Source of the DNA: Macrostomum lignano
Taxonomy: Eukaryota
DNA length: 64,000 nucleotides
Direction: 5' to 3'
NCBI GenBank assembly: GCA_002269645.1
Contig: NIVC01001456.1
Coordinates: forward strand, 1-64,000
The position numbers were made by a program, and so were the translations under genes. Positions 1 to 33,717 of this stretch are shown here, piece by piece. Position 1 is the stretch's first letter; the number at the start of each line of letters is the position of its first letter. The notes below the pieces were generated by a model, which had not been told where the DNA came from, did no database searches, and worked only from the letters and a program-made list of their open reading frames with translations.

Positions 1-297
1 CCACGCTTAATTGACAAATAAATTCGCAATACAGTACGCGCATAAAGCACATAAAACACCATATAAAAATAAACAAGGATGAGTCCACAGCAATAGCAAA
101 GTGTCACGACTGTCGACCAAGTTTTCGGTAGTTAAGCCGATCAGGTGGCTTTCGGTCTCTCTTTGGGCGGACGCCATGCTGTAGCTCTTCCTTCTTGTTC
201 GCGCCAGCTTCGTTCAGCTGGCTCTGCTCCACCCTTGGCTTGTACTGTTCATTGTGCATTAATCTGCGGGCTCCGTCGCTGGTCTCGACTTCACCTG

Positions 298-1611
298 TCA
301 CCTCACCTTGCCCACTATTACAGCGGGCTTCCACTTCATGACGTTATTGTACTGTCGAATCCAGACTGGGTCGTTTAGGTTCGCAGACTTCCTGAGATTA
401 GTCACTTTGTTTCTCAAGAGTTGCCCTCTCATGAGCTCAGAGGGAGCTTTCCCAGTGCTGGAATGACAAGCGTTTCGGTACTGCATGAGAAATCGATCTA
501 CAGTAGCTTGGACGTCTTTGTAACCGGCTGCTCGCAAATGGTTTTTTAAATCTCTTACGAATCGCTCAGCACAGCCGTTGGATCTAGGGTGGTAAGGTGG
601 TGTGAGCACGTGGTTGCATCCGATGCATCTTAACCACATCTTGAATTCGTCGGACGTAAATTGTGGTCCATTGTCCGAAACAAGTGTAACTGGCACCCCT
701 TCCTGGGCAAAATTACGTCGAAGACGCCTAATAGTTTCTTCAGATGTCGTACTCCTGGTGATGTGCACTTCGGCCCATTTGCTAAAAGCGTCAATGATGA
801 CCAGTGCATATGCACCATTTGGGAATGGTCCAGCATAGTCGACATGGACACGCATCCACTTTTTAGTCTCTTCTGGCCACGAGCTCCATTGTTTGGTGGT
901 GTGATCCTTCCCTTGCTGACAGCCTTCGCAGGCCTTTACCTTAAGCGTGAGATCCTTGTCAATGCCAGGCCACCAAACACACTCTCTGGCCAGCGACTTC
1001 ATTCGCTCAACACCAATATGTCCTTCATGCAGTATCTCAGTCACCTTTTCTCTTAACATTTGTGGAATGATTATTCGATTCCCTGGGTAGATGATGCTGT
1101 CGTCTAGGCTGAGTTCGTCTGTCATTTTACGGAAGTGCGGCAGCTTTACTCTTCCTTCCTCAGTCCATCCAAACTTTAGCTGCTTGAACAAAAGGCGCAT
1201 CTCCTGATCCTGCTTAGAGACTTCCCGGATTTCTTTCTTGGAAATTGGCAGCTCTACTGAAGTGTACTGAATCTTATTCACTTCAAAATATTGTGCCTCG
1301 GCTGCTTCGCTTTCGCACCGTGAAAGTGCGTCTGCAACCGGGATCTCCTCAGATCGCAGACATTGAATGTCGTAGTCATACGCCATTAGGATGATTGACC
1401 ATCTTTTTATCCTTGCTGCTGCAACTGCCGAAATTCCTCTTCCTGGGTTAAAGATGAACTTGAGAGGTTGATGATCCGTCACTAACGTGAAGCGCCGACC
1501 AAAAAGGTACTTATGCAGGCGTTTGACAGCCCACGTAATACCCAGCGCCTCTCTCTCGATCTGTGCATACTTTCTCTCTGCTGACGTAAGCGTCTTGGAT
1601 GCGAACAGCAC
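298..1611 (-). CDS. RNase H and integrase portion of gypsy pol, truncated at its 3' end
   Basis: TDHQPL, ADALSR, H-X3-H...C-X2-C and DDE motifs. Confidence 0.88.
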   Translation of the reverse strand: MLFASKTLTSAERKYAQIEREALGITWAVKRLHKYLFGRRFTLVTDHQPLKFIFNPGRGISAVAAARIKRWSIILMAYDYDIQCLRSEEIPVADALSRCESEAAEAQYFEVNKIQYTSVELPISKKEIREVSKQDQEMRLLFKQLKFGWTEEGRVKLPHFRKMTDELSLDDSIIYPGNRIIIPQMLREKVTEILHEGHIGVERMKSLARECVWWPGIDKDLTLKVKACEGCQQGKDHTTKQWSSWPEETKKWMRVHVDYAGPFPNGAYALVIIDAFSKWAEVHITRSTTSEETIRRLRRNFAQEGVPVTLVSDNGPQFTSDEFKMWLRCIGCNHVLTPPYHPRSNGCAERFVRDLKNHLRAAGYKDVQATVDRFLMQYRNACHSSTGKAPSELMRGQLLRNKVTNLRKSANLNDPVWIRQYNNVMKWKPAVIVGKVR

Positions 1612-1740
1612 CGGGCCCTCAGACTGTTCCAGAACGGCACCAACACCGTGCGGGGAAGCATCACATGTCTAGCGTAATAGCCTGTCGCTCGGGTTAAATG
1701 GCTTCAAGATGTTACTTCTGGCTAGCATTTGCTTCAGCTT

Positions 1741-2879
1741 TTAAAAAGCTTGCTTCTGACTTGCTTGCCATGACCAACGTGTGTTCTGCCTGAGTAGCTC
1801 ACTCAGTGGTTCCTTCACTTCCGAGAGGTTTGGCAGAAACTTAGAATAAAACTCCATCATGCCAATGAACGATCGCAATTGAGCTGCATTTGTTGGCTTC
1901 TTGAATTGCAAAATGACATCAAGTTTCTTCGGGTTGGGTCGAATTCCTTGCTGGTTAATCAGAAATCCCAGAAACTCCACCACCAGTTGTCCAATTTTGC
2001 TCTTCTCCATGTTCACTTCCAGACTGTGCTCTTTCAGTCTGTTCAGAACGGCCTTTAGCTGCTGATCGTGACTCTGCTGATCCTTTCCATGCACTAGTAT
2101 GTCATCCTGATAGGAATGCACATTCTTCATGCCAAACAGAATTCGATCCATAAAACTTTGAAAGATGGCAGAACTCTGCTTGATTCCGAACGGAAGGAAG
2201 TTGTATCGGAAGAGTCCAAACGGTGTTGAAATTGTTGTCAACTTGGAGGACTCATACTGAAGTGGTAACTGCAAATATGCATTTGTCAAGTCCAAAGTAG
2301 AAAATATCTTTGAGCCATGCAGCTCAGCGAAAATGTCATCTGCTGCCGGAGTAGTTGTGACCATCCTGTTCAGATGCTCATTCAGAGTGACTTTGTAATC
2401 GCCACAAATTCGGATTTTACCATTTGGCTTGCGGACACACACAATCGGTGTTGCCCAGTCACTGTCGTCCACTTTGGTTATCTTGCCTTCTTTCTCCAGA
2501 TTCTCGAGTTCTTCCTTCACTTGGTCCCTTATGGCAAATGGAATAGCTCGTGGTTTGAGAAAATTGGCTTAGTGTCTTCAGCCAATGTGATTGACACTTT
2601 AGTTGATGATGATGCCACTCTCACCAGTTGCTCGGTATCTGCAGCATCGAGCCCCTCAACACCAAAAACACTGCTGCCAGATTTCACGATATACAGTGGA
2701 AGCTCTCCTCTGAATCCTACATACACTACACTGACGTGTGAGACACCTAGCAGTCCAATATCATTACCGTTGTAATCCTTGAACCTGCGAGTTGTGGTCT
2801 CTATTGGCGTGTGCTCTTTCAGCTGATTGAATTCAGCAAGTGACATAAGTGAAACATCAGACCCTGTGTCCAACAACAT
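1741..2879 (-). pseudogene. Protease and reverse transcriptase of the gypsy element, frameshifted
   Basis: LLDTGSDVS, then KPIF-[shift]-KPRAIPFAIRDQVKEELENLEK...LPFGIKQSSAIFQ...YQDDILV. Confidence 0.88.
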
Positions 2880-3782
2880 TTAAACGTGAGTACCATTTAT
2901 GACCCCCTGTCTTTTGAAACGTTCGCCGCCAAGGCTAAGAACATTATCACAGTCATCAGGTTCAGGTGTCTTACCGGTAACTGCACTGATAGTAGCACTC
3001 TTTGTCAGAGAATTTCCACCGCTTCTGCACACGGCCGTCTTCAGATGCCCAACCTTTCCGCAGAGTCTACACTTGAAGTTTTTAAACTTGCACTGTGCCT
3101 TGGAGTGGTTTGGCTTACCACAACAATAGCAGGCTCTTGCTTCATGCTTCTGCGCAGATTTGCTTCTGAGCTGAGTAGGCTTCGGTGTCCACTTGCTTGA
3201 TGCACTCGAAGATAAGAAATTCTTCTTCATCTGGACTTTAAAAACTTCTTCCTTTGACATGTCTTGTTCTCCTCTGCCGACAGCCTCACATGCTGACGCT
3301 ACTGTGGTGACCTTTTCCAAAGTTAGGTCTTCCAGCTTCTCTGTCAGCAGTTTCCTCAAGATGTCTCTATTCTCCAATCCGAAAATAAATTGATCACAAA
3401 GTCGCTCGTTGATGTCTGTAAACTGGCATCCTTCAGCACCCAGTCTCAGTCTTCTTGCGTAAGATGCAGTGTCTTCGTCTTTCTTTTGCTTCATTTGATG
3501 AAATTCATAGCGCAATGCAATCGCTAACTTATCCGGCTTGATCTGGCTCTTCAATACTCCAACCAGTTGCTCGTACGACTTAGAAGTTGGCTCATCAGGG
3601 GAAACCGCATCCGCGATTATATCAAATCCTTTCGGACCGATGGACGCTAAGAATGCGTTCCTTTTCGTATCATCCTTCCAACCTTCAGGTGAAGCGATGA
3701 TCTCGAACCTTTGGATCCAGCGCTTTCGGCACTCGTCGAAATTCAGTATCTCCAGTTGCCTTGCACCGATCCTCGTCGCCAT
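2880..3782 (-). CDS. Gag of the Mag-like gypsy element (300 aa, two zinc knuckles)
   Basis: ORF track plus the CCHC motifs; ATG overlaps the PBS-like motif. Confidence 0.85.
   Translation of the reverse strand: MATRIGARQLEILNFDECRKRWIQRFEIIASPEGWKDDTKRNAFLASIGPKGFDIIADAVSPDEPTSKSYEQLVGVLKSQIKPDKLAIALRYEFHQMKQKKDEDTASYARRLRLGAEGCQFTDINERLCDQFIFGLENRDILRKLLTEKLEDLTLEKVTTVASACEAVGRGEQDMSKEEVFKVQMKKNFLSSSASSKWTPKPTQLRSKSAQKHEARACYCCGKPNHSKAQCKFKNFKCRLCGKVGHLKTAVCRSGGNSLTKSATISAVTGKTPEPDDCDNVLSLGGERFKRQGVINGTHV
3773..3782 (-). promoter_or_regulatory. Primer-binding-site-like motif TGGCGACGAG
   Basis: Minus strand reads ...GACTAACA-A-TGGCGACGAG directly after a CA-ending LTR-like stretch, as is typical of Mag-clade elements. 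Confidence 0.6.
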
Positions 3783-3959
3783 TGTTAGTCTGTCGTTGGT
3801 CTCCTGGTTGAGTCACTAAGGCAGTTGACACGTTGGTACACCATTTTACCCTCGATTTTGAACAAGGAGAACTTCGAAACTGACAAACTCCTCTTCAATA
3901 TTGACACTCTATGGTCGGGCACTCAAAATCTACAATCAATATTGACAAGTACCAATATT

Positions 3960-4415
3960 GGGTACTTGCTATTTGGGAGAAGGGGTACTGGCTGCATGTA
4001 TCTACGAGTACATGTATGGGAATATTTTTATCCAGGGATGCTTGCTATCTGGGTGGATGTTTGCTACCTGGATGATGCTTGCTATCTGCAAGATGCTTGC
4101 TATCTGGGGGATGCTTGCTATCTGGGTGGATGTTTGCTACCTGGATGATGCTTGCTATCTGGGTGGATGTTTGCTATCTGGGTGGATGCTTGCTATCTGG
4201 GGGATGCTTGCTATCTGGGTGGATGCTTGCTATCTGGGTGGATGCTTGCTATCTGGGTGGATGCTTGCTGTCTTGGGATGTTAAATGACCGGCCTTTTGC
4301 TAGAGTCCCTTGAGAGAGCAGGGACTCTAGCAAGCATCCCTAAATAGAAATATTCCCATACATGTACTCGTAGATACATGCAGCCAGTACCCCTTATCCC
4401 AAATAGCAAGTACCC
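3960..4415. mobile_element. Second TIR element nested inside the MITE
   Basis: GGGTACTTGCTATTTGGGA...GGGAATATTT (3960-4027) is the inverse of AAATATTCCC...TCCCAAATAGCAAGTACCC (4346-4415). Confidence 0.75.
4037..4270 (+). repeat. ~20-bp minisatellite (GATGCTTGCTATCTGGGTG-like) in the core of the nested element
   Basis: About 11-12 tandem copies visible. Confidence 0.85.
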
Positions 4416-5039
4416 CCCCCCCTCAAGAGAGAAATCTTAGTAAAAATTGTCAAAATCTATTTCAAAAAATGTCTTAGTCAAAATTGATTGTTAACTGTTC
4501 AATATTGATTCGGAGTTGTCAAAAATGAAGCGGACTTTTTGGGTACACAAACCATAGAGTGTCAGTTTTGAAGCAACTCTGTCAAAATAGAATCAGACTT
4601 TGCAGCCCAACCAGTCAGGCTATTTTAGTCTGTGTGTCTAAAGGATAGAGAAAAATAAATTTTATCAATACTTGTAGATCCAAAAAGCAAAGTCAGAATA
4701 AGCTGATTTTGCACAGCTCACTTCAGCCCCGTTCAGGCTTTCATTGGATTACTTTGTTACCGAATTCTCCCAGGAGAAGTTGACTAAACGTGCATTGTCA
4801 AAATTGAACCAGAGTTTGTCAAAATTGAAGCTTGATCTGTCAATATTGATTGTAGATTTTGAATGCCCGACCATAGAGTGTCAATATTGAAGAGGAGTTT
4901 GTCAGTTTCGAAGTTCTCCTTGTTCAAAATCGAGGGTAAAATGGTGTATTGTTGGTTGATGTTGGCTCTTATTTATTTCATCTCTCCAACGCTCCTCCTC
5001 TTTTCTTGCTCTTTATTTCGGCTAGACAACGCATACACA

Positions 5040-6142
5040 CAAGCGGTCTGTAGCAGCTTTTTGAGCCATAGACATATGGCGCAGCTTGCGGACTTTAGCC
5101 GCTGCCCACAGCCAACACTTACGACTACCTGGGGCATCTTCTGCAACACGTGAGCTTCACCATAAAATAGAGCAAGTCCACGACCCCAGGACAGCACATA
5201 GTCTTTCTCGGCGTTCAAAATATCACAACTGACGGCGCGCTGTGGCTGCCCATGGATAATGCGGTCAGGGATTTGCTGAAAGACTGCCTCTCCAGCAACA
5301 ATGTCAAACTCAAACAACTTGAGAGGCTGGCCGGGAAGCTGTGCTTCTTGGGCCAGATCAACAAGCTGCTGCATCCGTTTCTTCGCCCGCTTTTTGACTT
5401 CATGGACGGTCGAGATCTCCGGCTGCCTCAAGAAGGTCGCGAGACGTGCTTCAATTGTGGCTGCAGGCAGTGGATTCTGACAGCACGGCTGCAGTCGGCA
5501 AGATCAACAAGCTGTTCTGCAGGCATCCGGCATTGTCCTGAGTCTAGGATTCAGCTGCATGCGTTTCATCTCCCTGGTCACATGAAGCTCAATAGCGAAT
5601 CTGCTTCTCGAGTGTTCAGCCCAAAGCATGAGCTCGTGAGCTTTGCTGGCGCCACTATGGCTCTCTGTGTGTCTGTCTTACTAAGTTTGTCTCGCACACC
5701 ATTTCTGCCGCGTCCTGCATCACCCTCCTTTCACAGATCAGAGCCGCGTTCCGCACGAACCTCTTACTCTAGCGTTCAAAACAGCCTCTTTGAGTGCAGT
5801 CTCTTTCATCCACAGGCGTCGCCAGCACCTGACCCCACCCAGGATAACACTCGACTGGCTTTCGTCTTCCGCGGAGACCGACAACTTCTGAGCAGGCAGC
5901 CACACAGCACAGCCGCTGTGCCCTATGTAGCACAGCACATCTTCTCCTTCTGCCCTGCAACAGCCCTCTGCTTCCATCTTCCGCTGTGGCCGCTCATTGC
6001 TGTCTGCCTGCCCTGGTGGCCTCCGCCTGACCATCGGCAAGTCTAAGACCAACCAGTTCAAGATCGCCAGCAGCTGCTAGCCTTCCTTATTTAATGCCCA
6101 CCGATCTGTCATGTTGCTGCTCTCTAGACAGTCATCCGGGTC
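5040..6142 (+). mobile_element. Decayed DIRS/Ngaro-type tyrosine-recombinase retrotransposon fragment
   Basis: RT C-terminus (LLQHVSFTIK*SKSTTPGQHIVFLGVQ), then LERLAGKLCFLGQINKLLHPFLRPL, an RNase H-like IQLHAFHLPGH and recombinase-like GGLRLTIGKSKTNQF. Stops and frameshifts present. Confidence 0.7.
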
Positions 6143-6519
6143 GAGCCGCAGCAGTCTCTGTTGTCTGTTCTGGGTGTCCACAGAGTCCCTTTGGCTGCCT
6201 CGGCCTTCATGCGTCTGATTAAGCGGGGCCTGTCGATTCGCGACATCCCAGGGGGCAACTTCTCAGGCAACAGTCTCCGCAGAAGCAGAGCCAGCCAGCG
6301 ACGTCTTCCACGTGCCTTGGTGACTGGCGCTCCGAATTCACCTTCCGCAATTGCTCGAACGATGCAGCTATTGCTCGTATGCGTTCTGCCGTCCAGCGGA
6401 TTGTTACTTCTGTTAACTAACTTTGGTTCCTCTACTTCCCTCGCTTTTTTTCTTTCGGGGTTGGGGTCGTCTCTTTTTCGTTGCCTTTTGCTCGCTGCCA
6501 CCCCGCCGAATTTGTGTTT

Positions 6520-7260
6520 GTTTCTCTGCTGTGGGTTTGCGAGTCAAAGAAATTTTTCGTGAATTCCCTGGGCTAACATATGCTTCAGATTACTCGATCT
6601 ATTCTACCACCCCAGTGAAACACTGCATCATCACTTCCGGCGACCCAGTTTTCTGCAACCCACGTCCTCTCTCTCCGGCAAAGTACACAGAAGCCAAGTC
6701 GGAATTTGAAAAGCTCCTTGAAAATGGGCATCCTTTGCCCGTCCTGCAGCCCTTTGGCTTTGCCCCTCAACATAGTCAAGAAAGCTGACGGACCGAGAAG
6801 ACCCTGCGGCGACTGCCGCGCCCTAAATAGCGCTACAATTCCCGACAGGTATCCACTTGCGCTTATCCAATATTTTCACCACTTACTCCACGGCAGCCAA
6901 ATCTTTAGCAAACTCAATTTGATCAAAGCTTACCACTTCATACCAGTCGCCGACAAGGACATCACTAAAACAGCAAGCTGTACACCGTTTGGCTCCTTCG
7001 AGTATGCCCGAATGCTATTTGGGATGCACAACTTCATTTGTACTTTCCAAAGTTTCAACGACTCACTATTTGGCAAACCTGCTTAGCGTCATAACTTGCG
7101 TCTGCAATATTCTAATTCATACCGAATCAGAGAACGACCACCATCGAGATGTTAAGATTGTTTTTCTACAACGCCTTCACAAGGAGGGCCTTCGAGTTCA
7201 GTAGACCGAATACCACTTCTTCTAAAGTAGCATCGAGTTCCTTGGTCACCTAGCAGCCGG
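6520..7260 (+). mobile_element. Decayed Ty3/gypsy reverse transcriptase fragment (different family from the 1-3.8 kb element)
   Basis: PVFCNPRPLSPAKYTEAKSEF, LNIVKKADGPRRPCGDCRALN, FSKLNLIKAYHFIPVA, TPFGSFEYARMLFGM, across frameshifts. Confidence 0.85.
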
Positions 7261-7702
7261 AATCCAGCCACTTTCGTTCCGTGTGGCAGCGCAGCGCAAA
7301 ACCTCGCCTCCAGAGATTTTAAGAGCCTCACGAGTACATGGAATGTCTGCGTTCAAACAAAGCCGGGTTCTATCCCGATTTTTCGACTTATCCGTTTCTA
7401 TATTTCTAGAAAGTTCTACTAAAAGATTAGATTAGGAGCCCACGTGAATGATAGGCGATTGCAAAGCCCGGATTTTAGCCGCTAATGCGCCCAATAGAAA
7501 AAAGTGAGCAGCTCTCTCGTTTTAACGCTCACCAGTAAGTCTGCGCTGAAATCAAAGAATATAAATCTCAAAAACATTTTCACAAAAGATTTCTAACTTC
7601 TTTGATATTTGACCATAAAACCCTAATGAATATATTCGTAAAATGAGCTATTTCCATTTCCTACACAAATAACTTTAATTTCAAATACAACCTGTAACTT
7701 AC

Positions 7703-10700
7703 CTGGCCATTCGCAGCGCACTGCTGCTCCAACTGAGACAAACGGTCCAAGCAAGTGCTCGCGTTCACGCATCCATTGGCTGCAGCGCAGTCGATCTCTC
7801 CCTGCATTTTATTGAAAACAAGCACATACGAGCGTACGAGTTGCACTGTGCCTTTGCTTTTACATTTCTAACCACAAATAGAAATGTACGTGTAAACATC
7901 AGCTCCTCACCATGCTGCAATTTATGCTTTGTCGACAAGGCGAACCGATCGGAACGCAACTCTTTGTTTCCAGACATGGCTCATATCCATACTGGCAGCC
8001 TCGACTGTACTCGACTCGGAGAATCTCGTCTCCGAAGTAGTTTCCGTCAGTCGGAGGCGCGTCCTGCTCCGGCAGCAGTCCGTTCCACAGTCTGCATGTT
8101 AAATTGACACTGCCCGGCTGTCTGAGTTGCACATAAAAGTATGAGCTCTCAACCGATAGCAGTAGGTATCCTGAGCCGAACTTTCTGACAGAAGCGCCGC
8201 CATAGTAGGTGTAGGCGTAGAGCGAATATTCGGTGTAGAGCGACGACGCCTCAATGTAGCAGTAGGCAGCCTTGCTCGGCGCCTCTCGACACAGCTGACG
8301 AACGTGGTCGTTGGGTGCGGAGTCGGGAAACTCGAACCGACCGAGACTGTCGCACCAAGGCGCAGATGCTGTCGACTGGTTCAATACTGCCTAAAATATT
8401 CCTTGGGTAGACATTGTCATACATGTATCCAGTGCCGTTCTTTTTCAGCACGACTGTCGGGAATCCAGCTGGTGGCGGTCGCGACTTCGGCGGAAGCAGG
8501 AATCCGTAGGTAGGCTGACACTCCGCGACTACTTGGCTGTCATTGTTAAAGTAGCGAACCCTCAGCTTTACCACGATAGACTCGCATTGGAGCCGGCGTA
8601 GTTGGACATTCCCAGAGCATCTGCGCTCACGCAGCTGTTATTATCGAGAAGCCTGTTGAGTGTAATTTCCTGTCCGATGCGGCTGTTGTCGAGCTTGTTG
8701 GATCCGAGTCTCATCACAGGAGGACCCACTTGCTGCACAACGGTGAAACGAACACTCAGATCCGCAGGAATGAAGCAGGAGTTTGTAGGCGACACGGACG
8801 TGATGATGGTCTTGTTGTTGGGACACGACCTCTTTGCCACCGCTTCATCGCACTGATCAGACTCGAGACACAAGTTGTATCCAGCATAACAGCGAACCAT
8901 GGAAGGTGAGCCTGTCGTGGTCGAGTTTGTGGAGTAGTAGCTTGTCGAACTGCAGGTAACGCTTGCGTAGTCGCATGTGGACCATGACAAATACTGCGTC
9001 CTATTGTAGCACATGCCTTGCTTCGGACAAAAGTTCTGAAAGAACGCAATTAAGAAAACATTTTTATTTTTTATCCTGGGAAAAAATTGAACCAATTGTC
9101 TAAAGATCTTAGTAAGGCAATAACTATCCTATCCTAAGCATCATCACGATTTAAAAGAAAAACTGCGATGCGCACGTAACGAAAATGCTTAAATCCTTAA
9201 AATAGCAGAGCACATCTTCTCCTTCTGCCCTGCAACAGCCCTCTGCTTCCATCTTCCGCTGTGGCCGCTCATCGCTGTCTGCCTGCCCTGGTGGCCTCCG
9301 CCTGACCATCGGCAAGTCTAAGACCAACCAGTTCAAGATCGCCAGCTGCTAGCCTTCTTTCCTTATGTAATGCCCACCGATCTGTCATGTTGCTGCTCTC
9401 TAGACAGTCATCCGGGTCGTGGTCAAAGCCTACCACTTCATACCAGTCGCCGACAAGGACATCACTAAAACAGCAAGCTGTACACCGTTTGGCTCCTTCG
9501 AGTATGCCCGAATGCTATTTGGGATGCACAACTTCATTTGTACTTTCCAAAGTTTCAACGACTCACTATTTGGCAAACCTGCTTAGCGTCATAACTTGCG
9601 TCTGCAATATTCTAATTCATACCGAATCAGAGAACGACCACCATCGAGATGTTAAGATTGTTTTTCTACAACGCCTTCACAAGGAGGGCCTTCGAGTTCA
9701 GTAGACCGAATACCACTTCTTCTAAAGTAGCATCGAGTTCCTTGGTCACCTAGCAGCCGGAATCCAGCCACTTTCGTTCCGTGTGGCAGCGCAGCGCAAA
9801 ACCTCGCCTCCAGAGATTTTAAGAGCCTCACGAGTACATGGAATGTCTGCGTTCAAACAAAGCCGGGTTCTATCCCGATTTTTCGACTTATCCGTTTCTA
9901 TATTTCTAGAAAGTTCTACTAAAAGATTAGATTAGGAGCCCACGTGAATGATAGGCGATTGCAAAGCCCGGATTTTAGCCGCTAATGCGCCCAATAGAAA
10001 AAAGTGAGCAGCTCTCTCGTTTTAACGCTCACCAGTAAGTCTGCGCTGAAATCAAAGAATATAAATCTCAAAAACATTTTCACAAAAGATTTCTAACTTC
10101 TTTGATATTTGACCATAAAACCCTAATGAATATATTCGTAAAATGAGCTATTTCCATTTCCTACACAAATAACTTTAATTTCAAATACAACCTGTAACTT
10201 ACCTGGCCATTCGCAGCGCACTGCTGCTCCAACTGAGACAAACGGTCCAAGCAAGTGCTCGCGTTCACGCATCCATTGGCTGCAGCGCAGTCGATCTCTC
10301 CCTGCATTTTATTGAAAACAAGCACATACGAGCGTACGAGTTGCACTGTGCCTTTGCTTTTACATTTCTAACCACAAATAGAAATGTACGTGTAAACATC
10401 AGCTCCTCACCATGCTGCAATTTATGCTTTGTCGACAAGGCGAACCGATCGGAACGCAACTCTTTGTTTCCAGACATGGCTCATATCCATACTGGCAGCC
10501 TCGACTGTACTCGACTCGGAGAATCTCGTCTCCGAAGTAGTTTCCGTCAGTCGGAGGCGCGTCCTGCTCCGGCAGCAGTCCGTTCCACAGTCTGCATGTT
10601 AAATTGACACTGCCCGGCTGTCTGAGTTGCACATAAAAGTATGAGCTCTCAACCGATAGCAGTAGGTATCCTGAGCCGAACTTTCTGACAGAAGCGCCGC

Positions 10701-13700
10701 CATAGTAGGTGTAGGCGTAGAGCGAATATTCGGTGTAGAGCGACGACGCCTCAATGTAGCAGTAGGCAGCCTTGCTCGGCGCCTCTCGACACAGCTGACG
10801 AACGTGGTCGTTGGGTGCGGAGTCGGGAAACTCGAACCGACCGAGACTGTCGCACCAAGGCGCAGATGCTGTCGACTGGTTCAATACTGGGCCTAAAATA
10901 TTCCTTGGGTAGACATTGTCATACATGTATCCAGTGCCGTTCTTTTTCAGCACGACTGTCGGGAATCCAGCTGGTGGCGGTCGCGACTTCGGCGGAAGCA
11001 GGAATCCGTAGGTAGGCTGACACTCCGCGACTACTTGGCTGTCATTGTTAAAGTAGCGAACCCTCAGCTTTACCAACGATAGACTCGCATTGGAGCCGGC
11101 GTAGTTGGACATTCCCAGAGCATCTGCGCTCACGCAGCTGTTATTATCGAGAAGCCTGTTGAGTGTAATTTCCTGTCCGATGCGGCTGTTGTCGAGCTTG
11201 TTGGATCCGAGTCTCATCACAGGAGGACCCACTTGCTGCACAACGGTGAAACGAACACTCAGATCCGCAGGAATGAAGCAGGAGTTTGTAGGCGACACGG
11301 ACGTGATGATGGTCTTGTTGTTGGGACACGACCTCTTTGCCACCGCTTCATCGCACTGATCAGACTCGAGACACAAGTTGTATCCAGCATAACAGCGAAC
11401 CATGGAAGGTGAGCCTGTCGTGGTCGAGTTTGTGGAGTAGTAGCTTGTCGAACTGCAGGTAACGCTTGCGTAGTCGCATGTGGACCATGACAAATACTGC
11501 GTCCTATTGTAGCACATGCCTTGCTTCGGACAAAAGTTCTGAAAGAACGCAATTAAGAAAACATTTTTATTTTTTATCCTGGGAAAAAATTGAACCAATT
11601 GTCTAAAGATCTTAGTAAGGCAATAACTATCCTATCCTAAGCATCATCACGATTTAAAAGAAAAACTGCGATGCGCACGTAACGAAAATGCTTAAATCCT
11701 TAAAATAGCAGAGCACATCTTCTCCTTCTGCCCTGCAACAGCCCTCTGCTTCCATCTTCCGCTGTGGCCGCTCATCGCTGTCTGCCTGCCCTGGTGGCCT
11801 CCGCCTGACCATCGGCAAGTCTAAGACCAACCAGTTCAAGATCGCCAGCTGCTAGCCTTCTTTCCTTATGTAATGCCCACCGATCTGTCATGTTGCTGCT
11901 CTCTAGACAGTCATCCGGGTCGTGGTCAAAGCCTACCACTTCATACCAGTCGCCGACAAGGACATCACTAAAACAGCAAGCTGTACACCGTTTGGCTCCT
12001 TCGAGTATGCCCGAATGCTATTTGGGATGCACAACTTCATTTGTACTTTCCAAAGTTTCAACGACTCACTATTTGGCAAACCTGCTTAGCGTCATAACTT
12101 GCGTCTGCAATATTCTAATTCATACCGAATCAGAGAACGACCACCATCGAGATGTTAAGATTGTTTTTCTACAACGCCTTCACAAGGAGGGCCTTCGAGT
12201 TCAGTAGACCGAATACCACTTCTTCTAAAGTAGCATCGAGTTCCTTGGTCACCTAGCAGCCGGAATCCAGCCACTTTCGTTCCGTGTGGCAGCGCAGCGC
12301 AAAACCTCGCCTCCAGAGATTTTAAGAGCCTCACGAGTACATGGAATGTCTGCGTTCAAACAAAGCCGGGTTCTATCCCGATTTTTCGACTTATCCGTTT
12401 CTATATTTCTAGAAAGTTCTACTAAAAGATTAGATTAGGAGCCCACGTGAATGATAGGCGATTGCAAAGCCCGGATTTTAGCCGCTAATGCGCCCAATAG
12501 AAAAAAGTGAGCAGCTCTCTCGTTTTAACGCTCACCAGTAAGTCTGCGCTGAAATCAAAGAATATAAATCTCAAAAACATTTTCACAAAAGATTTCTAAC
12601 TTCTTTGATATTTGACCATAAAACCCTAATGAATATATTCGTAAAATGAGCTATTTCCATTTCCTACACAAATAACTTTAATTTCAAATACAACCTGTAA
12701 CTTACCTGGCCATTCGCAGCGCACTGCTGCTCCAACTGAGACAAACGGTCCAAGCAAGTGCTCGCGTTCACGCATCCATTGGCTGCAGCGCAGTCGATCT
12801 CTCCCTGCATTTTATTGAAAACAAGCACATACGAGCGTACGAGTTGCACTGTGCCTTTGCTTTTACATTTCTAACCACAAATAGAAATGTACGTGTAAAC
12901 ATCAGCTCCTCACCATGCTGCAATTTATGCTTTGTCGACAAGGCGAACCGATCGGAACGCAACTCTTTGTTTCCAGACATGGCTCATATCCATACTGGCA
13001 GCCTCGACTGTACTCGACTCGGAGAATCTCGTCTCCGAAGTAGTTTCCGTCAGTCGGAGGCGCGTCCTGCTCCGGCAGCAGTCCGTTCCACAGTCTGCAT
13101 GTTAAATTGACACTGCCCGGCTGTCTGAGTTGCACATAAAAGTATGAGCTCTCAACCGATAGCAGTAGGTATCCTGAGCCGAACTTTCTGACAGAAGCGC
13201 CGCCATAGTAGGTGTAGGCGTAGAGCGAATATTCGGTGTAGAGCGACGACGCCTCAATGTAGCAGTAGGCAGCCTTGCTCGGCGCCTCTCGACACAGCTG
13301 ACGAACGTGGTCGTTGGGTGCGGAGTCGGGAAACTCGAACCGACCGAGACTGTCGCACCAAGGCGCAGATGCTGTCGACTGGTTCAATACTGGGCCTAAA
13401 ATATTCCTTGGGTAGACATTGTCATACATGTATCCAGTGCCGTTCTTTTTCAGCACGACTGTCGGGAATCCAGCTGGTGGCGGTCGCGACTTCGGCGGAA
13501 GCAGGAATCCGTAGGTAGGCTGACACTCCGCGACTACTTGGCTGTCATTGTTAAAGTAGCGAACCCTCAGCTTTACCAACGATAGACTCGCATTGGAGCC
13601 GGCGTAGTTGGACATTCCCAGAGCATCTGCGCTCACGCAGCTGTTATTATCGAGAAGCCTGTTGAGTGTAATTTCCTGTCCGATGCGGCTGTTGTCGAGC

Positions 13701-16700
13701 TTGTTGGATCCGAGTCTCATCACAGGAGGACCCACTTGCTGCACAACGGTGAAACGAACACTCAGATCCGCAGGAATGAAGCAGGAGTTTGTAGGCGACA
13801 CGGACGTGATGATGGTCTTGTTGTTGGGACACGACCTCTTTGCCACCGCTTCATCGCACTGATCAGACTCGAGACACAAGTTGTATCCAGCATAACAGCG
13901 AACCATGGAAGGTGAGCCTGTCGTGGTCGAGTTTGTGGAGTAGTAGCTTGTCGAACTGCAGGTAACGCTTGCGTAGTCGCATGTGGACCATGACAAATAC
14001 TGCGTCCTATTGTAGCACATGCCTTGCTTCGGACAAAAGTTCTGAAAGAACGCAATTAAGAAAACATTTTTATTTTTTATCCTGGGAAAAAATTGAACCA
14101 ATTGTCTAAAGATCTTAGTAAGGCAATAACTATCCTATCCTAAGCATCATCACGATTTAAAAGAAAAACTGCGATGCGCACGTAACGAAAATGCTTAAAT
14201 CCTTAAAATAGCAGAGCACATCTTCTCCTTCTGCCCTGCAACAGCCCTCTGCTTCCATCTTCCGCTGTGGCCGCTCATCGCTGTCTGCCTGCCCTGGTGG
14301 CCTCCGCCTGACCATCGGCAAGTCTAAGACCAACCAGTTCAAGATCGCCAGCTGCTAGCCTTCTTTCCTTATGTAATGCCCACCGATCTGTCATGTTGCT
14401 GCTCTCTAGACAGTCATCCGGGTCGTGGTCAAAGCCTACCACTTCATACCAGTCGCCGACAAGGACATCACTAAAACAGCAAGCTGTACACCGTTTGGCT
14501 CCTTCGAGTATGCCCGAATGCTATTTGGGATGCACAACTTCATTTGTACTTTCCAAAGTTTCAACGACTCACTATTTGGCAAACCTGCTTAGCGTCATAA
14601 CTTGCGTCTGCAATATTCTAATTCATACCGAATCAGAGAACGACCACCATCGAGATGTTAAGATTGTTTTTCTACAACGCCTTCACAAGGAGGGCCTTCG
14701 AGTTCAGTAGACCGAATACCACTTCTTCTAAAGTAGCATCGAGTTCCTTGGTCACCTAGCAGCCGGAATCCAGCCACTTTCGTTCCGTGTGGCAGCGCAG
14801 CGCAAAACCTCGCCTCCAGAGATTTTAAGAGCCTCACGAGTACATGGAATGTCTGCGTTCAAACAAAGCCGGGTTCTATCCCGATTTTTCGACTTATCCG
14901 TTTCTATATTTCTAGAAAGTTCTACTAAAAGATTAGATTAGGAGCCCACGTGAATGATAGGCGATTGCAAAGCCCGGATTTTAGCCGCTAATGCGCCCAA
15001 TAGAAAAAAGTGAGCAGCTCTCTCGTTTTAACGCTCACCAGTAAGTCTGCGCTGAAATCAAAGAATATAAATCTCAAAAACATTTTCACAAAAGATTTCT
15101 AACTTCTTTGATATTTGACCATAAAACCCTAATGAATATATTCGTAAAATGAGCTATTTCCATTTCCTACACAAATAACTTTAATTTCAAATACAACCTG
15201 TAACTTACCTGGCCATTCGCAGCGCACTGCTGCTCCAACTGAGACAAACGGTCCAAGCAAGTGCTCGCGTTCACGCATCCATTGGCTGCAGCGCAGTCGA
15301 TCTCTCCCTGCATTTTATTGAAAACAAGCACATACGAGCGTACGAGTTGCACTGTGCCTTTGCTTTTACATTTCTAACCACAAATAGAAATGTACGTGTA
15401 AACATCAGCTCCTCACCATGCTGCAATTTATGCTTTGTCGACAAGGCGAACCGATCGGAACGCAACTCTTTGTTTCCAGACATGGCTCATATCCATACTG
15501 GCAGCCTCGACTGTACTCGACTCGGAGAATCTCGTCTCCGAAGTAGTTTCCGTCAGTCGGAGGCGCGTCCTGCTCCGGCAGCAGTCCGTTCCACAGTCTG
15601 CATGTTAAATTGACACTGCCCGGCTGTCTGAGTTGCACATAAAAGTATGAGCTCTCAACCGATAGCAGTAGGTATCCTGAGCCGAACTTTCTGACAGAAG
15701 CGCCGCCATAGTAGGTGTAGGCGTAGAGCGAATATTCGGTGTAGAGCGACGACGCCTCAATGTAGCAGTAGGCAGCCTTGCTCGGCGCCTCTCGACACAG
15801 CTGACGAACGTGGTCGTTGGGTGCGGAGTCGGGAAACTCGAACCGACCGAGACTGTCGCACCAAGGCGCAGATGCTGTCGACTGGTTCAATACTGGGCCT
15901 AAAATATTCCTTGGGTAGACATTGTCATACATGTATCCAGTGCCGTTCTTTTTCAGCACGACTGTCGGGAATCCAGCTGGTGGCGGTCGCGACTTCGGCG
16001 GAAGCAGGAATCCGTAGGTAGGCTGACACTCCGCGACTACTTGGCTGTCATTGTTAAAGTAGCGAACCCTCAGCTTTACCAACGATAGACTCGCATTGGA
16101 GCCGGCGTAGTTGGACATTCCCAGAGCATCTGCGCTCACGCAGCTGTTATTATCGAGAAGCCTGTTGAGTGTAATTTCCTGTCCGATGCGGCTGTTGTCG
16201 AGCTTGTTGGATCCGAGTCTCATCACAGGAGGACCCACTTGCTGCACAACGGTGAAACGAACACTCAGATCCGCAGGAATGAAGCAGGAGTTTGTAGGCG
16301 ACACGGACGTGATGATGGTCTTGTTGTTGGGACACGACCTCTTTGCCACCGCTTCATCGCACTGATCAGACTCGAGACACAAGTTGTATCCAGCATAACA
16401 GCGAACCATGGAAGGTGAGCCTGTCGTGGTCGAGTTTGTGGAGTAGTAGCTTGTCGAACTGCAGGTAACGCTTGCGTAGTCGCATGTGGACCATGACAAA
16501 TACTGCGTCCTATTGTAGCACATGCCTTGCTTCGGACAAAAGTTCTGAAAGAACGCAATTAAGAAAACATTTTTATTTTTTATCCTGGGAAAAAATTGAA
16601 CCAATTGTCTAAAGATCTTAGTAAGGCAATAACTATCCTATCCTAAGCATCATCACGATTTAAAAGAAAAACTGCGATGCGCACGTAACGAAAATGCTTA

Positions 16701-19700
16701 AATCCTTAAAATAGCAGAGCACATCTTCTCCTTCTGCCCTGCAACAGCCCTCTGCTTCCATCTTCCGCTGTGGCCGCTCATCGCTGTCTGCCTGCCCTGG
16801 TGGCCTCCGCCTGACCATCGGCAAGTCTAAGACCAACCAGTTCAAGATCGCCAGCTGCTAGCCTTCTTTCCTTATGTAATGCCCACCGATCTGTCATGTT
16901 GCTGCTCTCTAGACAGTCATCCGGGTCGTGGTCAAAGCCTACCACTTCATACCAGTCGCCGACAAGGACATCACTAAAACAGCAAGCTGTACACCGTTTG
17001 GCTCCTTCGAGTATGCCCGAATGCTATTTGGGATGCACAACTTCATTTGTACTTTCCAAAGTTTCAACGACTCACTATTTGGCAAACCTGCTTAGCGTCA
17101 TAACTTGCGTCTGCAATATTCTAATTCATACCGAATCAGAGAACGACCACCATCGAGATGTTAAGATTGTTTTTCTACAACGCCTTCACAAGGAGGGCCT
17201 TCGAGTTCAGTAGACCGAATACCACTTCTTCTAAAGTAGCATCGAGTTCCTTGGTCACCTAGCAGCCGGAATCCAGCCACTTTCGTTCCGTGTGGCAGCG
17301 CAGCGCAAAACCTCGCCTCCAGAGATTTTAAGAGCCTCACGAGTACATGGAATGTCTGCGTTCAAACAAAGCCGGGTTCTATCCCGATTTTTCGACTTAT
17401 CCGTTTCTATATTTCTAGAAAGTTCTACTAAAAGATTAGATTAGGAGCCCACGTGAATGATAGGCGATTGCAAAGCCCGGATTTTAGCCGCTAATGCGCC
17501 CAATAGAAAAAAGTGAGCAGCTCTCTCGTTTTAACGCTCACCAGTAAGTCTGCGCTGAAATCAAAGAATATAAATCTCAAAAACATTTTCACAAAAGATT
17601 TCTAACTTCTTTGATATTTGACCATAAAACCCTAATGAATATATTCGTAAAATGAGCTATTTCCATTTCCTACACAAATAACTTTAATTTCAAATACAAC
17701 CTGTAACTTACCTGGCCATTCGCAGCGCACTGCTGCTCCAACTGAGACAAACGGTCCAAGCAAGTGCTCGCGTTCACGCATCCATTGGCTGCAGCGCAGT
17801 CGATCTCTCCCTGCATTTTATTGAAAACAAGCACATACGAGCGTACGAGTTGCACTGTGCCTTTGCTTTTACATTTCTAACCACAAATAGAAATGTACGT
17901 GTAAACATCAGCTCCTCACCATGCTGCAATTTATGCTTTGTCGACAAGGCGAACCGATCGGAACGCAACTCTTTGTTTCCAGACATGGCTCATATCCATA
18001 CTGGCAGCCTCGACTGTACTCGACTCGGAGAATCTCGTCTCCGAAGTAGTTTCCGTCAGTCGGAGGCGCGTCCTGCTCCGGCAGCAGTCCGTTCCACAGT
18101 CTGCATGTTAAATTGACACTGCCCGGCTGTCTGAGTTGCACATAAAAGTATGAGCTCTCAACCGATAGCAGTAGGTATCCTGAGCCGAACTTTCTGACAG
18201 AAGCGCCGCCATAGTAGGTGTAGGCGTAGAGCGAATATTCGGTGTAGAGCGACGACGCCTCAATGTAGCAGTAGGCAGCCTTGCTCGGCGCCTCTCGACA
18301 CAGCTGACGAACGTGGTCGTTGGGTGCGGAGTCGGGAAACTCGAACCGACCGAGACTGTCGCACCAAGGCGCAGATGCTGTCGACTGGTTCAATACTGGG
18401 CCTAAAATATTCCTTGGGTAGACATTGTCATACATGTATCCAGTGCCGTTCTTTTTCAGCACGACTGTCGGGAATCCAGCTGGTGGCGGTCGCGACTTCG
18501 GCGGAAGCAGGAATCCGTAGGTAGGCTGACACTCCGCGACTACTTGGCTGTCATTGTTAAAGTAGCGAACCCTCAGCTTTACCAACGATAGACTCGCATT
18601 GGAGCCGGCGTAGTTGGACATTCCCAGAGCATCTGCGCTCACGCAGCTGTTATTATCGAGAAGCCTGTTGAGTGTAATTTCCTGTCCGATGCGGCTGTTG
18701 TCGAGCTTGTTGGATCCGAGTCTCATCACAGGAGGACCCACTTGCTGCACAACGGTGAAACGAACACTCAGATCCGCAGGAATGAAGCAGGAGTTTGTAG
18801 GCGACACGGACGTGATGATGGTCTTGTTGTTGGGACACGACCTCTTCGCCACTGCTTCATCGCACTGTGTCTGTCTTAGACACATATTGTAACCGGAATA
18901 GCATCGGATCAGAGGCTCAGTGCTGGTGCTGGTGGCATTGTCGCACGGGCTGCTCATGTAACTGCAGGTGTCCCAGGGCATGTAAACAGTTCTGTTGTAG
19001 CAGATTCCTTGTTTAGGGCAGAAGTTCTAAAAAATATTTGTTAGATTATTATCTTTTTCACTTGGAAAGAAGTACGTAGTTGAAGGTAAAATTTTAGAGT
19101 TTCCATGCGTGTCAATGTGTGTACTATTGTTTTCTTGCAAGTCGGTGAATTTCGGGTGGACGGTGTACATTGGAGATCCTCGTACATATGCTTTGTATTG
19201 TTGTCTGCCATCCCAGAAGGCAAAGTGAATCTGCCCTTGTAGCTGCGAATGTTTTTTCGAAGATATAAGAATATGAGTCAAATTAAATTAAGTGACTCAA
19301 GAGCTGTTAAACTGACGTAAATGCTCGTAGATTTTTATGCGACTCATAACTGTGCATGAGAATTTGTTTTCTGATAAGTAGAACGAACAGAATGCAGCGC
19401 GTATACCAGTCAAATTTGGAAAATTTGTGATACGCAAATTTTTATTTGCTATTCCACCAGGGTGTATTAGAGACCGTCTACTGAAGAGAAGCAGGAAAAG
19501 AATTTGAAGCGAATCTCTTAGTCTTATATAGAGTTAGCAAAAAAATTGCGCGCTGGCTTTTGAATAAAAATTAGACTGTTAAAACCGTCTGACAAAGTGA
19601 TGACCAGAAACCAGTCCTGGACTATAACGAGTTAATAAGAACAAACACGATTCTTTCTTTGTCAAAAATTCCAGTGAATGATTTTTTTGAGAAAAACTGG

Positions 19701-21666
19701 ACCTTGAAGATTTCCACCCATTTGGATTCAAACTTATGCGAACTGGCACTAGATGTCAAAAGTCCTTATGACAGGGGCAGATTTTTATGCAAGCTAGAAT
19801 AAGAAACGAGGTGCAATTCAGGATGGACAATTATATATCAATATGTACTTTTGTAAAGTATTTTTACAGTAATTGTATTCTTCATGAAATAAGAATATTA
19901 AGACATTTCTATCCATGCGATGGGACAGAAAGAACGGCATAACCTACTTGGTTGTTCGTGGCACACTGCTGCTCCAAGTCAATAATGCTGCCCAAGCAGG
20001 CACTCGCGTTGGCACAACCGTTAGCGGCAGGGCAGTCAAACTCTCCCTGTAAATTTATTTTGTACGCTTCGTCAGGTACAGAAAATAGTTACTACTGAGC
20101 AGTTAAGTCCCTATATTAGTACATACCGCGGTACAGTTCAGTCGCTCCCGACACAAAGTGTCTGCTGGAAGGCAGTTTTTTGCTGGCAAGCACGGGTTCA
20201 GGCCCGATGGACAGTGTATACTGTATTTGATTTGGAGAATCTCGTCTCCAAAGTAGTTACCATCAGTCGGGGGAGTGCCTTTCATCGGCAGCAGTCCGTT
20301 CCACAATCTGCATGTCAGATTCACACTTCCTGGCTGTCTCAAATATGTATTCATATACATTTTCTTTATATCGAGGATCAGATATCCAGATCCATAGTGC
20401 ATTACTGGAGCACCACTGGAGTAGGAGTAGGCATAGATAGAATACTCTGTGTAGTGAGACGACGCCTCGATGTAGCAGTAGGCAGCCTTCCTTGGTATAT
20501 CTCGGCACAGTTCGCGCTTTCGCTTATTTGCTCCCCGTCCGGGAAACTCAGCGATACCGAGGCCATCGCACCATGGAGCTGATGCATTTGACTGGTTCAA
20601 TGCTGAGCTTAAAATATTTCCCGGGTAGACATAGTCATGCATGCTTGCAGTGCCGTTCTTTTCTAACTCGACTGTCGGGAAACCAGCTGGTGGTGGTCGC
20701 GACTTCGGCGGAAGCAGGAATCCGTAGGTAGGCTGACACTCCGCGACTACCTTGTTGTCCTTGTTAAAGTAGCGAACCTCAGCTTTACCCACGATAGACT
20801 CGCATTGGAGCCGGCGTAGTTGGACATTCCCAGTGCGTCTGCGCTCACGCAGCTGTTGTTATCGAGAAGCCTGTTGAGTGTAATTTCCTGTCCGATGCGG
20901 CTGTTGTCGAGCTTGTTGGATCCGAGTCTCATCACAGGAGGACCCACTTGCTGCACAACGGTGAAACGAACATTCAGATCCGCAGGAATGAAGCAGGAGT
21001 TTGTAGGCGACACGGACGTGATAATGGTCTTGTTGTTGGGACACGACCTTTTCGCAATCGCTTCTTCGCATTGACTAGATTTTAGGCATAAGCCGTATCC
21101 AGCATAGCATCGAGCCTTTGAACTGATGTTGTAACCCGAATAGCTGGTGCAAGATTCGCTGGAGTAATCGCAAGTGCCCCAGAAGTTGTACTCTGTTTGA
21201 TTCCAACAGCGGCCTTGCTTCGGGCAGATTGCCTAGGTGGGAATTAAAAAAATTGCATTAATTGTCTTATGTGTTGTTCATTTACGAGTACTATTAGAGA
21301 CTTTTGAGCGCATTGTGAATGCTCAAACTTCAAATACTCGAACGTCCATCGAGCGTTCACGACTAAGACTCTCACCAAGTCATTTGCGGCGCAATCCTCC
21401 TCCATCGATGTAATTTCGTCCATGCAGACGGAGAAGTTTTTGCAGCTACTCGTTGTTGGACAGAACATCTCAGTCTAAAATTGGAGTTTGCACATTGAAT
21501 GATTCCTATCATCTGGACTCTATTATTGGGCCCGTACATATCTGATCTCTTCAAAAACGACCGAATGACTTACTTCATCGGAACAGTTTCCAGGAGAGGC
21601 GGTTTGACTGGCCACACCGTGTGCCAGCAGCAGTGCCAACCACAGTTGAAGCAGGGCGCCTGCCAT
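7703..21666 (-). CDS. Large modular secreted Cys-rich glycoprotein of unknown family; 3' end not in the window
   Basis: Signal exon 21574-21666 (MAGALLQLWLALLLAHGVAS...). Small 99-nt exons at 21376-21474, 19948-20046, 17712-17810, 15209-15307, 12706-12804, 10203-10301, 7703-7801. Large exons at 20127-21232, 17920-19026, 15417-16544, 12914-14041, 10411-11538, 7911-9035. Every junction is canonical AG|...|GT in phase 0. No stop-containing terminal exon found. Confidence 0.8.
7911..9035 (-). pseudogene. Large module exon L6 with two small deletions (real lesion or consensus error)
   Basis: 1125 nt. The -1 near 8575 gives an immediate stop (ASLSW*); a -2 follows near 8388. Confidence 0.7.
9203..9760 (+). 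mobile_element. Chimeric DIRS-recombinase/gypsy-RT relic in each array intron (also ~11706-12263, 14209-14766, 16712-17269)
   Basis: 9203-9418 copies 5928-6142 and is joined directly to a copy of 6919 onward; 6143-6918 is missing. Confidence 0.85.
10411..11538 (-). CDS. Large module exon L5 (376 aa, same as L3)
   Basis: Array copy with the same splice sites. Confidence 0.85.
12914..14041 (-). CDS. Large module exon L4 (376 aa, same as L3)
   Basis: Array copy with the same splice sites. Confidence 0.85.
15417..16544 (-). CDS. Large module exon L3 (376 aa, intact)
   Basis: TTTCAG|NFCPKQGMCYNRTQ...INCSM|GTGAG; 1128 nt. Confidence 0.85.
17920..19026 (-). CDS. Large module exon L2 (369 aa, intact)
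   Basis: TTTTTTAG|NFCPKQGICYNRTVYMPWDTC...INCSM|GTGAG; 1107 nt. Confidence 0.85.
20127..21232 (-). CDS. Large module exon L1 (divergent copy, 1-nt deletion near 20780)
   Basis: AICPKQGRCWNQ...RERLNCTA|GT. Length 1106 nt, one short of 369 codons; split into the 88-aa and 229-aa ORFs. Confidence 0.75.
21574..21666 (-). CDS. Exon 1 of the modular gene: ATG and signal peptide (31 aa)
   Basis: MAGALLQLWLALLLAHGVASQTASPGNCSDE followed by a GTAAGT donor. Confidence 0.8.

Positions 21667-28349: not shown

Positions 28350-33717
<5,368 letters not shown>

Follow-up and report, generated by a model that had tools for sequence, protein, structure and literature searches.

A tandemly amplified exon pair in a probable REJ-family glycoprotein gene of the flatworm Macrostomum lignano

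Introduction

It is textbook knowledge that long modular extracellular proteins can arise when a block of exons is amplified and the reading frame is preserved. In the kringle IV-2 array of human LPA, a two-exon unit of a few kb is repeated in near-identical, frame-preserving copies whose number sets the length of the protein, and copy-number polymorphism of this array is documented. It is the closest analogy to the locus described here, although the kringle domain and the lineage are unrelated. We analyzed a stretch of 64,000 nucleotides (nt) from the flatworm Macrostomum lignano (GenBank assembly GCA_002269645.1, contig NIVC01001456.1, positions 1 to 64,000 of the forward strand; hereafter the window), in which short (S) and long (L) exons alternate between positions 7703 and 21666 and an S/L exon pair is repeated in near-identical tandem units. 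In our view this locus probably represents the 5′ portion, coding for the ectodomain, of a genuine gene that is cis-spliced and encodes a lineage-specific REJ-family glycoprotein, and in which an exon pair was recently amplified.

Two described protein systems serve for comparison. The sea-urchin SpREJ/PKD1 proteins have large modular ectodomains, a REJ domain and 1-11 transmembrane (TM) segments, and act in cell-surface recognition and signalling (PMC1934368). The adhesive proteins Mlig-ap1 and Mlig-ap2 of M. lignano contain repeats of 255 and 221 amino acids (aa), 46 repeats being present in Mlig-ap2, together with vWD, TIL, LDL, TSP-1, EGF and C-lectin domains or Lys/Arg-rich regions (PMC6410801). 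These two adhesive proteins come from the same species as the protein predicted from the window and resemble it in their very large size, in being secreted and glycosylated, in their richness in Cys and in their long arrays of internal repeats.

Results

The array gene is encoded on the minus strand and consists, within the window, of a first exon (E1) followed by seven S exons (S1 to S7) in alternation with six L exons (L1 to L6). A sequence-only reading made beforehand had positioned the gene correctly, with end coordinates that proved exact, but had left the strand unstated. E1 (21577-21666, 90 nt) carries the ATG and a signal peptide (30 codons); it encodes MAGALLQLWLALLLAHGVAS/QTASPGNCSDE and ends in phase 0 at the donor GTAAGT. 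All S exons are exactly 99 nt long and encode 33 aa with 4 Cys. They are located at 21376-21474 (S1, the most divergent), 19948-20046 (S2), 17712-17810 (S3), 15209-15307 (S4), 12706-12804 (S5), 10203-10301 (S6) and 7703-7801 (S7), the last of which is followed by a GTAAGT donor; no later coding exon of the gene can be recognised in the window. Among the L exons, L2 (17920-19026, 1107 nt), a hybrid unit, and L3 (15417-16544), L4 (12914-14041) and L5 (10411-11538), each of 1128 nt, are open, L4 and L5 being identical to L3. The frame of L1 (20127-21232, 1106 nt) is broken by a 1-nt deletion, and L6 (7911-9035, 1125 nt) has two indels and is otherwise identical to L3-L5. An AG acceptor and a GT donor were found at 13 of the 13 S and L exons. 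The signal-peptide exon, the alternation of 99-nt exons (33 aa, 4 Cys) with long ones and the canonical splice sites described in the sequence-only reading were thus confirmed, and its coordinates and exon sizes are in essence correct, L1 having 1106 nt and not 1107.

A period of 2,503 bp is evident both in the spacing of the open reading frames (ORFs) and in direct repeats, in agreement with the ~2.5-kb tandem array noticed earlier. The identity w[i]=w[i+2503] holds unbroken for i=8573-16343, so that the periodicity is exact across 8573-18846 (10.3 kb). The near-identical array as a whole spans 6923-18846 and comprises about 4.8 units with at least 99.8% identity. In a gapped comparison, the terminal unit (6923-9422) differed from its neighbour only in two single-nucleotide polymorphisms (SNPs; 6922 and 6930) and in two deletions, one of 2 nt (8389) and one of 1 nt (8573). 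In each unit an L exon is separated by a 109-nt intron from an S exon, after which comes a 1,167-nt intron with transposon-derived sequence. Whole exons are repeated, and each unit preserves the frame, since its exons add up to 1128 + 99 = 1227 nt, or 409 codons.

The S+L module is 99% identical to M. lignano entries in UniProt. The 2,727-aa model A0A1I8J2W3 (P0011) runs E1-S1-L1-S2-...-L6-S7, with the signal peptide, the 6 L and 7 S exons and exactly the junctions mapped in the window; it differs in having L6 intact and in bridging L1 by an impossible 11-nt "intron". The models P0007, P0001 and P0012 (A0A1I8J1P4) likewise join exons at the mapped junctions, and A0A1I8FW02, A0A1I8J2V7 and A0A1I8J1P4 are fragment models of the same locus. 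Independent models therefore agree with the sequence-only reading that the locus is one gene and not a row of stand-alone 399-aa genes, and the one-gene reading is already public as an automated prediction. Upstream of E1 the UniProt models place a tiny exon ("MNRAPQ"). Beyond S7, the tail of P0011 maps to window positions 6076-5768 and 5491-5132, and P0012 instead joins S7 to 6540-6127, both with 99-100% identity. Because these tails are unconserved and lie within a transposon-rich stretch, we regard them as prediction artefacts. The automatic names of the locus models conflict with one another (EGF-like for A0A1I8J2W3, ShKT for a noisy fragment with the order L-S-L, and also Disintegrin and GON), and a paralogue, P0008, is named ZP; Pfam gave no match to EGF-like, Disintegrin, ShKT, GON or ZP in the module, P0007 or P0008, even at E 1-10. 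An exact look-up of three window ORFs in public assemblies returned nothing on record, and a literature search found no mention of the accessions or of any Macrostomum REJ protein.

L exons with 52-63% identity to those of the window were found on four genomic contigs from relatives (L001-L004; Logan SRR28338156, Logan SRR19430222, ENA ERZ27315222 and JGI 3300038379). L001-L003 each have an L exon with an S exon on one side or on both (S-L, L-S and S-L-S), and L004 carries only the 3′ part of an L exon. Where complete, the S exons are 99 nt long (L001 and L002; S is partial in L003) and the L exons 1110-1152 nt, a multiple of 3. The boundaries examined have an AG acceptor or a GT donor at the equivalent position or within a few codons of it, the introns measure 71-148 nt, and similarity vanishes past the exon ends. 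The recurrence of the S/L alternation, of phase 0 and of the exon sizes in relatives indicates that the alternation is old and constrained. The L exons have no ATG with a signal peptide (in L3 none comes after the first ATG, "MCYNRT"), and the 399-aa ORFs start at a TTG inside the intron; both features make stand-alone or trans-spliced unit genes unlikely.

One S+L module is 409 aa long and contains 24 Cys and 11 N-x-S/T sequons, close to the ~405 aa, many Cys and about ten sequons counted earlier. The seven S copies in the window follow the pattern G-[ED]-x-D-C-x5-C-x5-C-x10-C...Q. The L exon (369-376 aa) encodes an N-terminal Cys-rich part, a beta-rich core with the motifs "CQPxYG..LPP" and "CRxWNG", and a C-terminal Cys knot, and invariant columns are present in both alignments of L modules (A1 and A2). 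Each S+L pair is predicted to be a disulfide-rich, heavily N-glycosylated extracellular module. Pfam searches with the module, P0007 and P0008 gave only a sub-threshold and implausible GH99 match. The PDB sequence/profile search was empty for the module and gave only an ADAMTS5 Cys-rich match (E 0.75) for P0008. Two AlphaFold2 models (mean predicted local distance difference test, pLDDT, 58 and 66) show a mainly beta core with some helices and Cys-rich segments on the flanks. The sequence-only reading could not assign the module to a known domain, and Pfam, the PDB search and Foldseek on the AlphaFold models assign none either. When 1.84 billion cluster representatives were searched exhaustively with a HMMER profile, 7 proteins were retrieved, namely M. 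lignano entries, two environmental or Sequence Read Archive (SRA) contig proteins and one borderline bacterial repeat protein; judged by these matches, the S+L family is seen so far only in Macrostomum and environmental relatives. An identity with the adhesive proteins was considered and rejected, since the 409-aa module has none of the Mlig-ap1/Mlig-ap2 domains by Pfam and the repeat size differs. The adhesive or mucus role proposed in the sequence-only reading is therefore without support, the module being unlike the known M. lignano glue proteins.

A link to a described family comes from M. lignano paralogues. P0008 (A0A1I8FVC6, 2,438 aa) and P0014 (A0A1I8I1B9), which was found with the tail of P0008 as query, have N-terminal L and S modules that are 63-84% identical to those of the window. 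After these modules follow, in order, a diverged L-like module (supported by alignment A2), a CGxC Cys-rich region, REJ, a Ser/Thr-rich stalk, one TM segment and a cytoplasmic tail. REJ was recognised by Pfam with 62 bits, against a cut-off of 25, in P0013 (BOX15_Mlig013328g1) and P0014; the TM segment is a single hydrophobic stretch identified by eye, and Pfam found no PLAT. The paralogues share the Cys pattern and the "C-R-x-W-N-G" motif with the window module and are likewise extracellular and sequon-rich; their models hold one or two modules and no near-identical array. On contig NIVC01001490.1 of GCA_002269645.1, an L module (276-1391) and REJ exons are colinear within about 10 kb, so the architecture is no chimera of the gene models. 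This compact paralogous REJ-family gene occupies 276-10442; the contig breaks off 276 nt before its L exon, and its NCBI model, P0013, starts only in mid-gene. P0013 also contains a GPS-like string, "CRSWSGADW..C..VTCVCHDISSF", seen by eye only; Pfam did not report GPS at E <=1.

Within the window, REJ (PF02010) has no Pfam match in the module, and tblastn with the 1,900-aa C-terminal part of P0008 found no trace of it. GPS, PLAT/LH2 and TM segments are also absent from the window gene, and with REJ, GPS, PLAT and TM all missing the window gene is not assignable to the PKD1/REJ family itself. Its similarity to the paralogues indicates that the S/L module forms the distal unit of the ectodomain in a lineage-specific group of surface glycoproteins with a REJ domain. 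The "very large secreted protein" of the sequence-only reading is consequently uncertain, because paralogues with the same module are REJ single-pass membrane proteins and the locus lacks a terminal exon. The likeness of the paralogues to SpREJ/PKD1 is a functional analogy through REJ. They differ in that Pfam detects neither GPS nor PLAT in them and in that they lack C-type lectin domains and PKD repeats, and their N-terminal S/L module is not known from SpREJ/PKD1. By this analogy, the module would most likely be the distal ligand- or surface-binding part of a REJ-type receptor or adhesion protein.

The sequence-only reading had all exons splicing in phase 0 into ~2500 aa. As assembled, however, the frames of L1 and L6 are broken, and only L2-L5 are open. 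In L1, GG stands where a GGG run is expected (~20778), which produces 14 stops in the nominal frame. In L6, 1 nt is missing at 8573 and 2 nt at 8389 (read on the coding strand, TT has become T and CCC has become C), and the 188 nt between these deletions are out of frame and contain 5 stops. Each of the three indels is the contraction of a homopolymer. Once a single base is put back, L1 measures 1107 nt and is open over 369 codons, and the ratio of non-synonymous to synonymous substitution rates (dN/dS) between repaired L1 and L3 is 0.28 overall and 0.25 over the 650 nt (219 codons) past the frameshift. The L1 lesion is therefore either very young or an error. L6 is intact in P0011, a model of the same locus, and P0007, a model from another contig, has different indel-bypassing skips at the equivalent sites. 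Two UniProt models cross L1 by way of an 11-nt GT..AG "mini-intron" between SLSW and VRYFNKD, from which it follows that their underlying sequence has the same deletion. By REAPR, error-free bases amount to 32% in the ML2 assembly and 64% in Mlig_3_7 (PMC5730564). We consider consensus errors of a noisy long-read assembly a more likely source of the three indels than real lesions. As a separate observation, positions 20778 and 8573 and the matching site in each L exon ("TCGT[T/G]GGTAAAG...GAGGGTT") vary among copies and assemblies (a W or L codon, +1 or -1 indels), and the frame breaks in the window and the skips in P0001, P0007 and P0011 all fall at this TCGT[T/G]GGTAAAG site, which is either a hotspot of sequencing errors or a site of genuine slippage. 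That the frameshift site marks a recombination boundary was considered and dropped, as the L1 conversion tract described below runs past the frameshift.

The array carries traces of its history. Modules 1 and 2 are old, the synonymous divergence (dS) between L1 and L3 being about 0.7. Since modules 1 and 2 are diverged and relatives show S-L-S, the multi-module structure is ancestral. L2 is a hybrid: its first ~180 nt are unique, and the rest, beginning at 18846, matches L3-L5 exactly. In the middle of L1 (about 21070-20650) the nucleotide identity to L3 is 88-100%, against 47-82% in the flanks, and this central tract has the signature of a gene conversion linking L1 to the array. The S-to-L intron measures 1,167 nt in the amplified unit, compared with 143 nt between S1 and L1 and 124-148 nt in relatives. 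The amplified intron carries, on the opposite strand, the 3′ part of a reverse-transcriptase (RT) fragment (6706-7086, plus strand; RVT_1, E 2.9e-6, below Pfam's cut-off). The distal end of the array, 6922/6923, falls inside an RT motif, between FSKLNL and IKAYH; only the part from 6923 upward is repeated in each unit, and RT homology extends leftward beyond 6923 in the terminal copy only. About 780 bp past the array end lies a 216-bp copy of an intron segment of the unit (5928-6143), 95% identical to 11706-11922; UniProt models treat this copy and its surroundings as 3′ coding exons, which are spurious.

From these features we infer a course of events in which a transposon fragment would first have entered the S-to-L intron. 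The 3′ part of the array would then, recently, have grown or been homogenised by tandem duplication or unequal crossing-over of the 2,503-bp block, the recombination possibly occurring between transposon-derived repeats, and gene conversion would also have joined L1 to the array. The number of modules would set the reach of the receptor and the count of its binding units.

Beyond S7 the order of features is the RT fragment, the duplicated intron piece, ORFs that could not be annotated, a foldback-like element and a Ty3/gypsy interior. The last of these is the interior of a Ty3/gypsy long terminal repeat (LTR) retroelement (298-3782, minus strand), with gag (weak Retrotrans_gag, zf-CCHC), a probable protease ORF, RVT_1 (E 9e-28), RNase H and integrase (rve, Integrase_H2C2), and it extends past the first position of the window. 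A search downstream of S7 for the ends of LTRs and for target-site duplications, which would show that a retroelement had split the gene, identified no LTRs. Just upstream of the gypsy gag, at ~3845-4945, inverted repeats of ~110 nt (3845-3960 and 4835-4945) surround a 19-bp satellite (4036-4273, about 13 copies); this element resembles a foldback or miniature inverted-repeat transposable element (MITE)-like insertion.

The remainder of the window, which has a base composition of ~47% GC with abundant micro- and minisatellites, contains other features. Upstream of the array gene and on the same strand lie exons of an ADAM-like gene (29552-30313 and 32156-32704, minus strand), with Disintegrin (PF00200, E 7e-15) and Reprolysin (PF01421, E 2e-7) matches; a (GACA)n microsatellite (29718-30032) directly adjoins the disintegrin-coding ORF. 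A 417-aa ORF at 42086-43339 (minus strand) has several long hydrophobic stretches, which suggests a multi-pass membrane protein, and has no Pfam match. At 48842-49447 and 51576-52013 (plus strand) are ORFs that, by eye only, look like exons of an AAA-type ATPase (a Walker-A-like string and a Lys/Gly-rich stretch). A 30-bp minisatellite with 47 copies (39573-40996) has long ORFs open on both strands, and its Pfam "Decapeptide repeat" match is probably a repeat artefact. Further arrays are located at 46904-47813 (22 bp, 41 copies), 54019-54971 (15 bp, 64 copies) and 31121-31703 (49 bp, 12 copies). Rfam gave no match within the window.

Discussion

The exon map, the conserved S/L alternation in relatives and the paralogues that carry REJ downstream of the same module argue that the locus is the 5′ part of a cis-spliced REJ-family gene. 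Several observations weigh against this reading. As assembled, a continuous long ORF does not exist, and the deletion in L1 may be real, as the two UniProt models that share it imply. The 7.7 kb that follow S7 contain neither a terminal exon nor a REJ/TM part and are retroelement-derived instead; the paralogue gene is compact by comparison. A word-index search of the NCBI annotation of Mlig_3_7 found no protein of the array locus; that annotation left out repeat-overlapping transcripts (PMC5730564). The identity of the four exact units could in part be a consensus or polishing artefact. Finally, Foldseek of both AlphaFold2 models against the PDB gave only generic beta-sandwich matches (template modelling score <=0.18); with no fold assigned, a binding role is suggested by analogy only. 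The gene may continue past the window behind an inserted retroelement; it may end near S7, as a truncated paralogue whose product is secreted; or what is seen may be a 5′ fragment that is dead.

The last of these possibilities corresponds to a pseudogene, that is, a REJ-family 5′ fragment cut from its REJ/TM part by the insertion of a retroelement, which gathers frameshifts while the array expands neutrally by unequal crossing-over. The L1 frameshift common to the window and two UniProt models, the two indels and 5 stops of L6, the lack of a 3′ exon, the RT fragment, the foldback-like element and the Ty3/gypsy interior that come after S7, the unmatched C-terminus of the paralogue and the missing NCBI protein model are all consistent with such decay. 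However, the S and L exons have kept every one of their 26 splice sites, the only stops are those caused by the three homopolymer indels, and repaired L1 stays open for the 219 codons past its frameshift with the low dN/dS given above. Moreover, L6 is undamaged in P0011, the assemblies are known to be indel-prone, and the remaining gene could lie past the left edge of the window, behind the retroelement. We therefore hold a pseudogene to be unlikely, if still to be reckoned with. An artefact of assembly would explain the array differently, the number of units being wrong (over-expanded or collapsed) and the 100% identity arising from consensus or polishing. An exact periodicity over 10.3 kb is indeed unusual, and M. 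lignano assemblies are highly repetitive, redundant and error-rich (PMC5730564). Because ML2 and Mlig_3_7 derive from the same PacBio reads (PMC5730564), the agreement of the UniProt model with the window on six L exons is not independent. On the other hand, the ~12-kb array has unique, diverged flanks on both sides (the L1/S2/L2 head and the RT fragment), its terminal unit has SNPs and indels of its own, the hybrid L2 and the conversion tract in L1 are hard to obtain by mis-assembly, and a multi-module structure is seen independently in paralogues and relatives, so that an artefact of this kind appears improbable.

A further alternative is that each 2.5-kb unit is a gene of its own, for example a spliced leader (SL)-trans-spliced cistron of ~370-400 aa. 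Every unit does contain a long 399-aa ORF, and in M. lignano trans-splicing is common, as are polycistronic precursors (PMC5730564). These ORFs, however, take their start from the intronic TTG, and the product that could begin at "MCYNRT" in L3 would be Cys-rich and full of sequons and yet lack a signal peptide. In addition, the S exons are kept in phase with AG/GT across species, while the extensions of the ORFs past the exon ends are unconserved. This alternative can hardly be sustained. A probable 5′ ectodomain part of a REJ-family gene, with its exon pair recently amplified, thus remains our preferred reading of the locus.

In its most far-reaching form, the proposal would be that the S/L pair is an undescribed ~400-aa, macrostomid-restricted extracellular domain that caps REJ-type receptors and is still expanding by unequal crossing-over and gene conversion, with a polymorphic module number that tunes recognition. 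What is recognised might be a gamete or a mating partner, to judge from sea-urchin REJ; Macrostomum serves as a model genus for the study of sexual conflict. Taken as a whole, we consider this a long shot. The "accordion" of the sequence-only reading, in which protein length changes by copy number or by exon skipping, is for now pure conjecture.

As an instance of frame-preserving exon-block amplification, the locus is a clean and very young example, with identical units, a breakpoint inside a transposon fragment and a conversion that reaches an older module. It also illustrates that ORF-style gene calling splits such genes and that the automatic names on public models (EGF-like, Disintegrin, ShKT, GON and ZP) are unreliable. 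The locus opens no long-standing question: it is a fairly ordinary case of gene growth by internal duplication, with limited novelty, in which the orphan module is of some interest. Through its REJ link, this module offers flatworm biologists a concrete family.

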